From contig OZ320314.1 in the NCBI GenBank assembly GCA_976226885.1, positions 34,162,001 to 34,226,000 on the forward strand: a stretch of DNA of 64,000 nt. Direction: 5' to 3'. The notes under the pieces are model-generated. The model was not told the origin of the DNA. It did no database searches and saw only the letters and a program-made list of their open reading frames with translations. This document shows, piece by piece, positions 17,401 through 54,319 of this stretch. The stretch is from Iphione sp. A-MEVVRFRX5 (taxonomy: Eukaryota). The stretch's first letter is position 1; each line of letters starts with the position of its first letter. The position numbers and the translations under genes are program-made.

Positions 17401-20400
17401 CCAAGAGGTAATGTTCTCTATAGGCTTTCTGGTAGCACATGTAAATACCATTTACTACCGAGAGGTACCGACAGTTTTTACTGGACGAAAACATAGTACT
17501 GCTTAAATTATACCATGAGCAAAATAGAGCTAGTTCACACGACCTTACTCCAGAGGAGTGACATCGTCTTTCGTTCTAATGTGAAAGCTATGACCTATTT
17601 ACGTCATGTATATGGTTTACGAGTCAACAAAAATGGACCGAGCAGTATTTATATACTATGAAAACTCACCTGTAGTTTCCAAGGTAAACTCCATCTGGAT
17701 TTAGCATTGGCACTATCTTAAAGACAAGATGGTCTCGCAGGAGCTTTGCAATTGGATGATTGCTTATAAGAAAATCCATGATGCCTGGTGGGGGAAACGG
17801 TGGAAGTTAATAGTTTTTACAAATTAAGCAGACAGTTTGTCGACAATCTTAATTTTTACTGTTTTATGTTAAATTTACAGTGAGCAAGTCAGGTTATTTG
17901 GCTATATTTGCACTGCCAAGAGCTATGCTATCGTTGCAAACATACATACCGTAAAATATAAATCATTTTTTAACGGTTTAAGAAAATAAGAGTCACAAAC
18001 GCTAATAATAGTGCAAAGCCTCAGGAAATGGTTAATTTACCTTGGCAGACATAGGATGAAGGAGTTTCACCAGGATGAACACGCGCTGTCAGAAAAATGA
18101 TTTTCTGCACTTTGTCTTCATTTTCCAAGTTTTCAGGGTTAGTGATGGTTATCAAGTCTAGTCTCCTCTGTTGCTGCAAAACCAAGAAACGTTTCTCTGA
18201 AGCCACACTCACATTACAGACGGGAGCATTATGGCCTACAGTTTTACCTCGAAAAAGGTTATTTAACCTGGCTTCTCTCTTTTCTTTCGTCTAAGTTAAG
18301 TTGGTCCATGCCAAATAATATTTAACCTGAGACAGATGCTTCTCTCGAATCGAAAAGGCAAGACACATGACACTTACCACGCTCAAACAGAGAAGCTCCC
18401 TCTGAAAATAATCCATGTTTCTTTTTTCAAGTGAATCCAGGTAGTTTTGCAAGCGGGTGTAGGAATAAGGATAGCAGTAGCTGAACTGGTACACATCATC
18501 TTCCCGGTCAAAGCAGAAGACAAAGGACATGACGTAGTTCTTCCTGTGGTCTGGACATCGATAGTAGTATACATGTTTTGGAGGGATCCGCACCCTGTTG
18601 AAGACAAGGAAACACAAGATGAAGCAGTTTGAGTGGTGGTTTACTGTTTGCTTGATAGTCAACTTGTTCGTGATTATGCCATAAATCATAACAACCGTGC
18701 ATTTAAATGAAATGATTTATTCTCTTCAGATGACTACTGCTGTTATCGGATCGTTCCTGCAAGACTTGAACCATCAACAAGTCCTAACGTATGCGACGGG
18801 CCTGCCAGCCTCCGCCGAGCTCTACCTGAAGGGAGCATCAGCCTTCACCGGTTACACACTGCCTGCGGCCACCCTACCTGACACAACCGGTCACGCACAG
18901 ATGAGCACAATCTACGACACACTGTCGATGCAGCCCATGCAGCCCATGCACGCCACCTCAGTTGCATCAGCGGCAGCATTGGCCGGCCATCACTTGATCA
19001 CAGATCCAACTCAACACATGCTCAGTCAAACCGTCACCACACCGTCAGACCATTCAGCTGCACACCACTCGGTAGCAGCTCTGGCAGCGCAACATCAATT
19101 CGAACAGGTAAGTGCATGATGCGCATGTAATGAAACGCTTCAGCAGGGTAGTGGCAACAGACACAATGGGCGGGGGCTGGTGGGGGGGGGGGGGGGCAGG
19201 AAGCTGGGCGGGAGATGCCCTGGGAATGAACCAGAAACGTTTCATTTTGTTGATGTCTAACTTCTATAATTGGGACTAGGATGAGTACCGTTGCATCCAA
19301 CTTGAAACTGGACGACTAAGCCATGCAACTCAGCCTTTGATGGAAATGTAAGGCGCAGTTTCGCATTATATTTTCGAGGTTTTTACCTTTTGTAGGGTTC
19401 ATGTTCTTGTTCAGTCGTCATGGCTGAAATCTGGACTGGCAATGACAAAAAGCTGACCTGTCCTGTTTCAAGACAGGTCTTGGTTTAACAGCATTTTCAA
19501 TGTTTGAGGCATCGTACCGATGAAACCCGGGGACCAAAATAGTAGGCCTATTTCTCTTCAAGTCCCAATAGTTCATTTTTCCCCATCGCAGTTGTTGGGC
19601 GTGGTGGTTAGAAGCCTAGATAGAAAAGTATATCTTTCAATGGGATCTAGGCAATAGTTTCTAGTTCCTCTACCCGACACTAGGAGGCTGTGGTGTGGAT
19701 TGGTAGTTGGATGGGAAACCCGGATTGTAACCCTCCCACGTATAAGTGATAACTAGCTGTTTCGTCGGGACACGTCTGGGTTAGAACTGGCCACTTCAAC
19801 AAGTGTAGTGCAAGTGTGAATGTCCTGATGTGTGATATCTGTATAGATCTCCAGAATGTATGAACACGCGTTTTTTTTTGTGAAGTTAACAACTGAAATC
19901 GACTTCTGCTGTAGTCTACATAGAATGGTGGTGAAAATCTCTCTCAAAAATAGCTACTTTGACCACAAATGAAACCGTTTTCTCAACATCTTTTCATTCG
20001 GTAACTAGACAAAATGTGATGAGGTAAGGCATGTAACAGATCCACTTGATCCATGGAGGAGGTGACAAGCCTCTTCACTATATAGGATAGCCGTATTTCT
20101 CATATGATCTCCGGCCCTCAGCCCTCTTAGTGAAAACCAATAGGCTTCCATCAATCTAATTGGTTTTTAGAAAAACGAATGCTCCGACCACAAGTGAACA
20201 AGTTCCCCAACTACAGACCTAGGCACAGGATGCAGGAAATGAGACTGACACCCAGATCTAGGCTCAGTTTCTCAGTGTTAACTTCATCATCAGGACTTAT
20301 TTATGCTAGGACCCTAACTTTCCACACACTGGTGTTAGTATAAAATGTAGTGAAGCATATTAGATGGAAGGGTTGGTATCTCTCATGTACAACTCATGAG

Positions 20401-52300: not shown

Positions 52301-54319
52301 AGGCGAAACCGGCGGGTAGTGGCCGATCCGTAGATCAAAAGGTGACTTGCGCTTGTGTTCAGACACGTGGGCCCATTCAAGGGTTAGCGTTTGTGTATCA
52401 ACAACGCTTCAACAATTTGAGAGAAGACTACCTGCTTGCGCCCTCGTACAGACTGATGGATTGGCGAAGATGTGAAAATTCGGTCTCAGCTCAACCTGAG
52501 CGCCACTGATCTAGGACCGGTCAAAAGTGACGCCATCCGTCTCCAGTGTGGCCTTTAGGTCAAGGACAGGTTAAAATTTCATGACGGATTTCCTACAGGC
52601 TTGACAGCAGATGACCGAGCACAGCTACTCTCCAGGTTGTAGCCCATTTCCCGACAGGAAACGTGGAAGTGCAGAGAAGAGGGAGGGGAGGGGGGGGGGG
52701 GAGGCAGAGTTGGCGGGTCCCGGAAGGTCACGCTATACACGTTGGGGGTTAATGCCTCGTAGAGGTTGAGATACCAGAGATAACTGTGCATGCACACCTT
52801 GATGCACTCCCCGTTTTGGTGTCCGGAATAACCACAAGGCAATTGTAATCATGTTGCTATTTTAAAGGGTGGTCAACCAGAACTCTAATGCGCAATAAAT
52901 GCACAAAGGGGTTTATTAGACAGCAAGCCGCTGCACAGCTATCCAATTAGGCAAGCATTAGCTACCATGGGAGGAGGCTGTTGTGGCTAGAATCTATTGG
53001 GACCATGAAGCCGACATTAAAAATGGATGCTTGATCATCCACCAATTCCCATTGTCTCATAGCATGATGCGTGTGTTTTTCACCCGCGGGGCACAGCATT
53101 ATTTGGCTCACAAACATCTGATGGTTAATTCATCAACAGAGTGTGCAGCTAGAGTGACGTCTGCTTCGTTTCTTCTCCCGCTCTTTTGCCCATCTATATG
53201 GCGCGCGTTCTGTCTTAATGTTGGCATCAGAACACAATTATAATGGCCATTTTCACACATGGGGTACAAACCTGAGGTTATGGACACAATTATCATGACC
53301 ATATTTATACACATGCAAATCTCGGGTGATGGAAACAGTCATCATGGCCGTATTAATATATGGTAGGATAACTCAGGTTATGGAACTTCCAAAAACTATG
53401 ACGAAGAAACTTTCACGGGTGTATTCATTTTCGCCATTTGGACTAACTTACATGCTATTCGACTTTTCAGTTGACGTTGCTTAGCTTTAATTCCTTTCAT
53501 CAGTTCAAGTGTGTATATGGATGGGCTTTTAACTGTGCCTCGTATCGTGACGTTATTATTTCAATTTGTCCCTTGTTTATCTTGTTATACTTTTGTCTGT
53601 TTCTTTTTTCCAGTTTTTACAGATGTTTTTAGCCAAATCCCACCACACCCCCATCTCCAGACGCCCAGCCAAACGTTTTCTTTCAGATGTTTTGTTTGTC
53701 CAACTTCGGTTTACTAGCGAGGCATCCTCGGCCGCGTCCCTTCTTTTGCCCCTGATTTGTTCACAGAGGTCGCTGGCGACTTGTATCATATGTTCTTATC
53801 GTCTTTTCCTGTTCCCCAGCCCACCCCCCTCCCGTGGCCCCATCTACCGTTTCCTTATAATTTTTCCTTTCTACGAAAAACAAAAAAATTACCACGACGA
53901 CCTGAGTTCGGCTGCTGACGGCGCTACCACGACCATCAACAGCCGCTGATGCTGCTGCTCCTTCAACGGTAATCTGTATACTTTTCAGTTTATGCAGATT
54001 CTCACCACTGGAGGGTGGCCTGATGCCGAACACACTGCTGACCGGGAACGCACTGAACGGAGCCGGCTGGTGTATCTTTGTCTACAACCTGGCCCCCGAG
54101 ACGGAAGAGAACGTCCTATGGCAGCTCTTCGGACCATTCGGAGCTGTCCAGAGTGTTAAGGTCATTCGCGACTTTCAGACCCAAAAGTGCAAAGGATTCG
54201 GATTTGTTACCATGACAAACTATGAGGAGGCTCTGATGGCCATCCAAAGTCTGAATGGATATACACTGGGGAACCGTGTATTACAAGTCTCCTTCAAAAC
54301 CAACAATCGTAAGTCGTAG
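34154..54319 (+). CDS. elav: ELAV/Hu family RNA-binding protein (3 RRMs plus hinge), core gene body
   Basis: Exons 34154-34394, 38186-38289, (41567-41720 or 42206-42359), 48890-49121 and 53998-54319 join in frame: 1020 nt from ATG 34187 to TAG. Signature motifs [72 protein letters not shown]. Confidence 0.97.
38186..38289 (+). CDS. elav: ELAV exon, second half of RRM1 ([35 protein letters not shown])
   Basis: Manual translation; ccctacag| acceptor, AAG|gttagt donor, 104 nt; RNP1 LGYGFVNY. A possible upstream in-frame acceptor lies at 38146. Confidence 0.96.
41567..41720 (+). CDS. elav: ELAV RRM2 first-half exon, copy A ([51 protein letters not shown])
   Basis: ttgtgtttgtag| acceptor, G|gtaggc donor, 154 nt, phase 0-1; not in the ORF track. 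Confidence 0.93.
42206..42359 (+). CDS. elav: ELAV RRM2 first-half exon, copy B ([51 protein letters not shown])
   Basis: cctttccttag| acceptor, G|gttggt donor, 154 nt, phase 0-1; 38/51 aa identical to copy A. Confidence 0.93.
45113..45210. repeat. (GCT)n / (GGT,GGC)n low-complexity tract in an elav intron
   Basis: gctgctgctgct...ggtggtggcggtggtggt seen directly. Confidence 0.8.
47297..47311 (+). CDS. elav: Candidate 15-nt ELAV microexon adding DSSVA to RRM2 loop 3
   Basis: ttctgtttcctttcag|ATTCTTCGGTTGCTG|gtaaac; phase 1-1, no stop codon, 46-nt AG-free U-rich tract upstream. Confidence 0.5.
48890..49121 (+). CDS. elav: ELAV exon, second half of RRM2 plus hinge ([78 protein letters not shown])
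   Basis: Manual translation; cgtttccag| acceptor, AG|gtaggt donor, 232 nt. Confidence 0.96.
53998..54319 (+). CDS. elav: ELAV last coding exon: hinge end plus RRM3 ([32 protein letters not shown]...[12 protein letters not shown])
   Basis: tttatgcag| acceptor (phase 2); overlaps ORF 54023-54319; TAG at 54317-54319. Confidence 0.97.

Follow-up and report, generated by a model that had tools for sequence, protein, structure and literature searches.

Introduction

ELAV/Hu proteins set neuronal splicing, the choice of 3' untranslated region (UTR) and mRNA stability, and the source of the diversity of their targets and partners is an open question. In the honeybee, the single elavl2 gene yields up to 40 isoforms through an exon in a loop of the second RNA recognition motif (RRM2), alternative splice sites and microexons in the hinge (Ustaoglu et al. 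2021, Commun Biol, PMC8553928). Splicing was proposed as a substitute for paralogs in the bee, and was described there as confined to linkers and loops, outside the RNA recognition domains (PMC8553928). Lophotrochozoans usually have Elav1 together with a lineage-specific, non-neuronal Elav2 (PMC7489019). Here, an elav gene is described from a 64,000-nucleotide (64-kilobase, kb) stretch of DNA of Iphione sp. A-MEVVRFRX5 (GenBank assembly GCA_976226885.1, contig OZ320314.1, positions 34,162,001 to 34,226,000 of the forward strand), which is referred to below as the window.

An initial annotation of the window had proposed that this one gene carries independent splicing switches in nearly every module of the protein. 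The analysis presented here makes it likely that the elav pre-mRNA is alternatively spliced at several separate sites that keep the reading frame, in the manner set out in the Discussion. In a close relative, splicing at multiple, apparently combinable sites is supported by transcript contigs.

Identity and exon structure of the gene

A complete ELAV/Hu gene occupies positions 30126-57800 of the plus strand of the window, the sequence of which contains no runs of N. The gene model was obtained by reading splice sites and by aligning two transcript contigs from a close relative (L001 and L002). Genomic contigs of relatives (L004, L005, L006, L007, L008 and L009, of which L006 and L008 are more distant) were also compared, and contigs of four marine metatranscriptomes (runs X3, X7 and X10 among them) were aligned to positions 48800-54400. 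Transcript contigs report the presence of a form and not its abundance.

Membership of the ELAV/Hu family was defined by three RRMs (two in tandem, a hinge and a third) and by a score over the curated cut-off of the TIGR01661 (ELAV_HUD_SF) profile, and the gene has both. Its exon pieces matched profile positions 1-41, 43-76, 77-127, 129-179 and 250-349 in order, with about 447 bits in total (a rough sum over the pieces) against a cut-off of 279.1. A full-length ortholog of ~90% identity from the relative's transcriptome (P0197) scored 506.6 bits as one protein; it was retrieved by a word-based protein search with the window exons aligned on an arthropod scaffold, most hits of which were arthropod. 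The Sex-lethal model gave 250 bits, under its cut-off of 486, and the best matches among solved structures were HuC, HuD and HuR (E values of 1e-71 to 1e-76). The closest named proteins were Platynereis Elav, Malacoceros ELAV1 and Phascolion Elav1 at 72-76%, in a comparison by sequence identity that included no Elav2; mollusc ELAV-like proteins were ~71-74% identical. N-terminal motifs common to the window gene, Lamellibrachia and other annelid sequences suggest that this lophotrochozoan gene belongs to an annelid. By these sequence comparisons the locus is an ELAV/Hu gene, probably of Elav1 type, and Sex-lethal and the other RRM families are less close to it. The exon framework of its three RRMs is that of other ELAV/Hu genes. 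The exons and candidate exons, with lengths in nucleotides (nt), are as follows.

18730-19107, plus strand: 126-codon internal exon with an ATG start, phase 0 at both ends; conserved; candidate elav N-terminus
~30126-30232, plus strand: exon 1, 5' UTR and start codon; the 5' ends of L001 and L002 align here
34154-34394, plus strand: exon 2, N-terminal region and first half of RRM1, ending in phase 1; internal in-frame ATG at 34187; TIGR01661 positions 1-41
38147-38185, plus strand: candidate 39-nt extension of exon 3, adding 13 amino acids to RRM1 loop 3; in frame and stop-free, probably not used
38186-38289, plus strand: exon 3, second half of RRM1; profile match and the relative's transcripts
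41567-41720, plus strand: exon 4A, 154 nt, inter-RRM linker and RRM2 beta1 (RNP2 'LYIS'), alpha1, beta2 and start of loop 3; the relative's transcripts
42206-42359, plus strand: exon 4B, 154 nt, second form of that half of RRM2 ('LYIC'); intact in relatives' genomes
47297-47311, plus strand: 15-nt microexon, adding DSSVA to RRM2 loop 3 (beta2-beta3); the relative's contig
48890-49121, plus strand: exon 5, RNP1, second half of RRM2 and start of the hinge, ending in phase 2; profile match and the relative's transcripts
50452-50493, plus strand: hinge cassette H1, 42 nt, 14 amino acids; the relative's protein and transcripts
51001-51081, plus strand: hinge cassette H2, 81 nt, 27 amino acids; the relative's contig
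53989-54319, plus strand: last coding exon, long form ('SLC' added) made with the upstream acceptor; remainder of the hinge, RRM3 and stop codon (54317-54319); L001, L002, X3 and X10
53998-54319, plus strand: last coding exon, short form ('RY-R-FSP') made with the downstream acceptor; X7 contig
54320-57800, plus strand: 3' UTR of at least ~3 kb; L001 aligns over 54555-57327

The canonical protein has 352 residues, whether it is built with 4A or with 4B. The sequence features listed in the initial annotation were all present where it had placed them. Conserved patches of the 3' UTR in L005 and L008 extend to ~57820. In L006, a 13-kb contig, the whole elav coding region lies within ~7 kb, as against ~24 kb in the window.

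A pair of alternative RRM2 exons

Exons 4A and 4B are of equal length (154 nt), run from phase 0 to phase 1, lie 485 nt apart and encode segments in which 38 of 51 residues are identical and 13 differ. When the reading frame was followed through the possible joints, inclusion of both exons led to a stop at codon 175, and omission of both to a stop at codon 122. Because both or neither would give an early stop, the mutual exclusivity of 4A and 4B is enforced at least by the reading frame.

The order 4A then 4B, with both copies intact and bordered by AG and GT, was found in L006, L008 and L009, and L007 also carries an intact exon B with AG/GT boundaries. RefSeq models A-type and B-type isoforms separately in the chiton Liolophura sinensis and the bivalves Mya arenaria, Mercenaria mercenaria and Ruditapes philippinarum; one gene model of Mya arenaria (P0176) reads through both copies. 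A single 90% cluster of annelid proteins holds a B-type complementary DNA (cDNA) of Malacoceros ELAV1 and A-type Logan transcripts, and flatworm ELAV proteins also show B-type sequences. The characters shared by these copies, and their shared order, suggest a single ancient A/B duplication. The A/B switch proposed in the initial annotation is supported, in that the pair is conserved in relatives and annotated as isoforms in four molluscs.

The two exons bear different marks of selection. Exon A shows 0 synonymous differences in 51 codons when the window is compared with the close relative, as against 87 in 297 codons of the other exons, an outcome with a chance of ~2e-8 under the pooled rate. 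Two nonsynonymous differences are present in exon A, and ~29% of the codons of neighbouring exons differ synonymously. This freeze points to a strong constraint at the RNA level, typical of regulated exons; the synonymous sites of H1 and of the microexon are likewise frozen in the same comparison. Between the window and L006 it is exon B that is the best conserved exon (87% of nucleotides, as against 74% for exon A), with 7 nonsynonymous and 11 synonymous codon differences, and it contains no stops in five species. The protein sequence of exon B is, on this evidence, under purifying selection.

The flanks of the pair were searched for inverted repeats of the docking or selector type, and only short, weak pairs were found around 4A and 4B, none of them convincing. 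Local RNA folding of exons A and B was not unusual (Z-scores of -0.18 and +1.0). As the intron between A and B is 485 nt long, a steric block is not expected.

The 13 differences between the A and B segments were mapped onto a predicted structure of RRM2 (predicted local distance difference test score, pLDDT, 84). In this model, alpha1 takes five of the differences, and loop 1, beta2 and loop 3 take two each; of the remaining two, one lies at the end of beta1, at RNP2 position 4 (Ser/Cys), and the other in the turn that precedes beta2. RNP1, alpha2 and beta4 of RRM2 are supplied by the constant exon 5. In RRMs, as in the RNA complexes of HuD and Sxl, beta1, beta2 and the beta2-beta3 loop face the RNA and alpha1 faces away from it. 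It is plausible from the model that the A/B swap affects RNA binding or the choice of partners.

Variation in the RRM2 loop and the hinge

The 15-nt microexon at 47297-47311 is preceded by a long pyrimidine tract and an AG, and is followed by a GTAAA donor. Upstream of exon 5 (48892), a contig from X7 carries the last 13 nt of exon A and then the identical 15 nt. This 15-mer is unique in the window, and has no match in L001 and L002, in which exon A is spliced straight to exon 5. The microexon is thus real and alternative in the close relative, and an exact copy of it, with splice sites, is present in the window. The microexon claimed in the initial annotation was accordingly substantiated by the one contig of the relative that includes it between exon A and exon 5 and by the two that skip it. 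Arthropod ELAV isoforms have insertions at the same junction of the RRM2 loop.

Two hinge cassettes, both absent from the initial annotation, lie between exon 5 and the last coding exon. Cassette H1 has good splice sites, and a peptide of the relative's protein P0197 matches window positions 50450-50488 at 100%. It is present in L001 and L002, and its joint with exon 5 (49121 to 50452) occurs in three runs. Onward joints from 50489 were found both to 53987 and to 53996, such that the contigs use both acceptors of the last exon: H1 is joined to 53989 in X3, X10, L001 and L002, and to 53998 in X7. Cassette H2 is represented by one X10 contig, in which 51001-51081 is spliced between exon 5 and 53989; its ends are GT..AG, and it has one mismatch in 81 nt. 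The short form made from 53998 is the one that matches other ELAV/Hu proteins. The reading frame is kept by every hinge combination, and the proposal that the hinge is made with or without three amino acids holds in the close relative, where the acceptors at 53989 and 53998 are both used.

The conserved hinge microexon motif, L/MLx[IVM]x2-5G[VLI]xR, was sought in all frames of the hinge intron, with and without a splice-site constraint, and was not found; the H1 and H2 peptides do not fit this consensus (bee exon 4c type) either. The acceptor of H1 is itself a tandem cag|cag (50449-50454), and the contigs show use of the first AG only. Splicing at the second would remove one serine, and recalls the alternative acceptor by which bee and vertebrate ELAV/Hu genes are reported to add a serine. 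The hinge intron of L006 is only ~590 nt long, and no hinge cassette is apparent in it.

The intron sequence just after exon 5 (49122-49315) is covered by contigs from two RNA runs. Read-through of the exon 5 donor leads to a stop after one codon; a protein that lacks RRM3 would therefore result from intron retention or from a premature 3' end. These contigs could equally be pre-mRNA.

RRM1 loop 3

The initial annotation had also proposed an alternative acceptor at 38147, by which exon 3 would gain 39 nt. The extension is in frame, but it is not conserved in L006 or L009 and is not represented in transcripts. Positions 38147-38185 contain the polypyrimidine tract of the normal acceptor and a branch-point-like TTCAT. 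It is improbable that the 38147 site is a real acceptor, and this part of the proposal was not upheld.

A different variant of the same loop was observed in the relative. In L002, RRM1 loop 3 is lengthened by a G-rich insertion of 36 nt, EGPGRTPGQAGA (positions 355-390), which is unrelated in sequence to 38147-38185. As this insertion has no pyrimidine tract, it is more likely to be a separate cassette than an extended acceptor. Its counterpart was sought in intron 2 of the window, where no match rose above those of shuffled sequences; the one 15-nt candidate (37900-37914) is unsupported. At the same junction, Platynereis Elav has ~8 extra residues, Liolophura isoforms are made with or without GLQ, and Mya isoforms with or without GN. 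The chances that some variation of the RRM1 loop occurs in this species are judged to be even.

N-termini and the 126-codon exon

Exon 1 ends in ATGCAG|gt and encodes 'MQ', which is joined in phase 0 to the 'ITT...' of exon 2. The block around exon 1 (29993-30241) is conserved in L004, and 'MQ|IT' N-termini are found in Platynereis Elav and in isoforms of Mya, Mercenaria and Ruditapes. In mollusc elav, three to four alternative first exons are joined at the same point. Of the two to four N-termini proposed in the initial annotation, the 'MQ' of exon 1 was confirmed in the relative's transcripts; the 126-codon exon proved to be coding, with no link to elav.

The peptide of the 126-codon exon (18730-19107) has amino acid identities of 69% and 64% in two relatives, and the exon is syntenic in L004. 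Conservation extends to its cag|ATG acceptor and its GAACAG|GT donor, and the insertions and deletions in it come in multiples of three. From this pattern of conservation it is taken to be a true coding exon. It lies within an intron of an antisense AGBL4-like gene, and searches of family, atlas and Pfam collections returned no match to it.

The 126-codon exon is a possible long alternative N-terminus of elav, in which case elav would overlap the AGBL4-like gene in antisense. Alternatively, it may be the first coding exon of a separate gene, nested antisense within the AGBL4-like gene, and elav would then have fewer N-termini and would not interleave with the AGBL4-like gene. No transcript or database protein was found that joins this exon to ELAV (the search with P0197 allowed 203-647 amino acids), and its peptide shows no similarity to the ELAV N-termini of other species, the long one of Lamellibrachia included. 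Because the exon begins at an acceptor, it needs an upstream exon of its own, which also counts for a separate gene. Nevertheless, the phase 0 donor fits elav exon 2, no other conserved coding block lies on the plus strand between this exon and elav, and alternative first coding exons at the same join point are common in mollusc elav. A separate gene is therefore given a probability of about one half.

Combinations of variants and alternative explanations

Five transcript contigs of the close relative represent four exon combinations: exon A without the microexon, with H1 and the long acceptor; the same with the RRM1 insertion; exon A with the microexon, H1 and the short acceptor; and H2 with the long acceptor. 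In Liolophura, RefSeq models eight isoforms that combine the N-terminus, the RRM1 loop, A/B and the hinge. The reading frame was open in all combinations tested that contain one of A and B. With the RRM1 loop and the N-termini set aside, at least 24-32 core forms that keep the frame are possible. The figure of 16 core combinations given in the initial annotation is thus incorrect, H1 and H2 having been missed, and its statement that only A/B was well supported is outdated, since the microexon and the hinge acceptors are now supported as well. Its wider proposal of independent switches in nearly every module stands for A/B, the microexon and the hinge acceptors, stands in part for the N-termini, and falls for the 39-nt RRM1 site. 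The combinatorial code for RNA-binding specificity that it suggested is at this stage a hypothesis, and the idea of a single regulator in place of four paralogs was overstated, because lophotrochozoans generally have both Elav1 and Elav2.

A number of observations weigh against multi-site splicing of this gene in this species. RNA runs of the species itself were sought and none was found; the best run, among marine metatranscriptomes, held a fraction of 0.10 of the sampled words. The transcript contigs differ by ~10% in coding exons and must therefore come from a relative. They are short and unphased, and the independence of the sites rests on the four combinations only. RefSeq isoforms are computed models. 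Since no transcript of exon B was found in this lineage, where L001, L002 and the metatranscriptome contigs contain 4A only, the use of exon B in this species can only be presumed; an exact 21-mer of exon B retrieved genomic contigs alone from metagenome assemblies, and no spliced ones. A tree of the 52-residue A/B segments gave no resolution, having 52 columns only. The relative's contigs held no transcript evidence for the 38147 acceptor. Finally, no match to the microexon, H1, H2 or the tandem acceptor was found in the more distant L006 and L008, which suggests for the microexon, the tandem acceptor and H1 that some of the switches are young.

These observations might be taken to mean that the gene makes few real isoforms, being in essence one protein (exon A with one hinge form), and that the remainder are noise, minor events or annotation artefacts. 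In favour of this are the transcripts of the close relative, which were all A-type, the lack of conservation of the microexon, tandem acceptor and H1 in distant relatives, the unsupported RRM1 site and the fact that contigs attest presence rather than abundance. However, five genomes carry an intact exon B, which in the comparison with L006 is better conserved than exon A, and the contigs with variant joints had depths comparable to those of others. The synonymous freeze seen in exon A, H1 and the microexon is what regulated exons would be expected to show, and in each of four molluscs A and B are modelled as distinct isoforms. It is consequently unlikely that the gene has so few forms.

It is more improbable still that exon B (or A) is mainly a poison exon, the joint inclusion of which would lead to decay and elav autoregulation and not to a second protein form. 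In its favour, A+B and double skipping give the stops at codons 175 and 122, bee elavl2 also makes frame-shifted truncated forms by skipping an RRM2 exon, and ELAV proteins regulate splicing, that of family members included. Against it, the exon B protein is under apparent purifying selection, B-only isoforms are annotated in molluscs and the Malacoceros cDNA is B-type.

Neighbouring gene and intergenic sequence

The AGBL4-like gene encodes a putative cytosolic carboxypeptidase, and lies on the minus strand at 12029-26489, head-to-head with elav. Its exon blocks are conserved in L004. In the human genome AGBL4 and ELAVL4 are also neighbours, on 1p33, and the adjacency of AGBL4 and elav may be a very old microsynteny.

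Between the two genes, a block of ~330 nt (27900-28235) is ~93% identical to L004, as compared with 77-82% for coding exons; none of its frames is free of stops, and an E-box-like CAGGTG lies within it. Its possible roles are those of a conserved enhancer, a promoter element common to both genes or an exon of a UTR. Smaller conserved intergenic blocks lie at 27400-27465, 28620-28694 and 29034-29135. Just downstream of exon 1 (30477-30840) is a GC-rich region of GCN repeats, with an open reading frame for poly-Ala/poly-Pro in several frames and a weak low-complexity similarity in L004. When the window was scanned for Rfam families and tRNAs, nothing was found.

Discussion

The most probable explanation for these observations is that elav is spliced at several separate sites, each of which keeps the frame. 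The 5' exons of the pre-mRNA would be alternative. In RRM2, two mutually exclusive exons of 154 nt would exchange beta1 (with RNP2), alpha1, beta2 and part of loop 3, and RNP1, alpha2 and beta4 would stay constant during the swap. To this would be added a microexon in the beta2-beta3 loop of RRM2, two hinge cassettes, a 9-nt tandem acceptor at the last exon and, as seen in relatives, variation of the beta2-beta3 loop of RRM1. Messages with A and B together or with neither would be lost to nonsense-mediated decay. The switches would otherwise combine freely, with A/B and the loop insertions tuning RNA recognition and the hinge variants tuning localisation or multimerisation.

A broader interpretation, which is put forward tentatively and is less probable than not, is that two interchangeable forms of the RNA-contacting half of RRM2, encoded by mutually exclusive exons, have persisted for more than 500 million years in spiralians (annelids, molluscs and perhaps flatworms). 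The neuronal master regulator would thereby have two specificities for RNA or for partners, with the choice made in each cell and combined with that of loop microexons and hinge cassettes. If so, the gene would be an exception to the view that the diversification of ELAV/Hu proteins by splicing avoids the RNA recognition domains, and the synonymous freeze of exon A would mark a dense RNA-level selector.

The RRM2 exon swap and the loop microexons would make the bee claim, that linkers vary and RNA recognition stays constant, open to test, since the A and B forms differ by 13 residues and can be compared directly in binding and rescue assays. For mutually exclusive splicing, the 4A/4B pair would also serve as a compact model that is old in evolutionary terms. 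Should the hinge and N-terminal variants be the only ones that matter, the gene would be an ordinary further example of the pattern known from bee and vertebrates.

Comparison with known systems

The proposal that splicing can stand in for paralogs has already been published for the bee, and the RRM2 exon swap appears to be undescribed, though it is visible in RefSeq isoforms. No description of a mutually exclusive RRM2 exon pair in ELAV genes was found in the literature, which is not proof that none exists, and no publication was found that describes the mollusc RefSeq isoform sets.

As in tandem-duplicated mutually exclusive exons generally (PMC9741552), 4A and 4B are adjacent and homologous, are equal in length and phase, are apparently of ancient origin and show elevated nucleotide conservation. 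Unlike known mutually exclusive exons, they have no recognised selection mechanism that is evident at the locus.

The small alternative exons between RRM2 and RRM3, and the tandem acceptor that adds residues at the start of the last exon, are features shared with Drosophila fne and with vertebrate HuB, HuC and HuD. In contrast to those genes, H1 and H2 have no similarity to the conserved hinge motif.

The mollusc RefSeq sets (Liolophura sinensis X1-X8, Mya arenaria X1-X6, Mercenaria and Ruditapes) resemble the window gene in their 'YIS' and 'YIC' halves of RRM2, in their three to four N-termini, 'MQ|IT' included, in a variation of two to three amino acids in RRM1 loop 3 and, in the chiton, in a hinge cassette. 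They differ in that the models listed have no RRM2 loop microexon, and in that their hinge cassettes are unrelated in sequence.

With bee elavl2, the gene has in common the combination of small alternative exons and splice sites in a neuronal ELAV/Hu gene, an RRM2-loop microexon at the same junction, hinge variants placed just before the R[FY]SP motif, and a frame shift upon skipping of an RRM2 exon. Unlike those of the bee, the hinge cassettes of the window do not match the conserved 4c motif. The pair described here, known from sequence and belonging to another phylum, also differs from the bee arrangement in that it replaces half of the RRM2 core.

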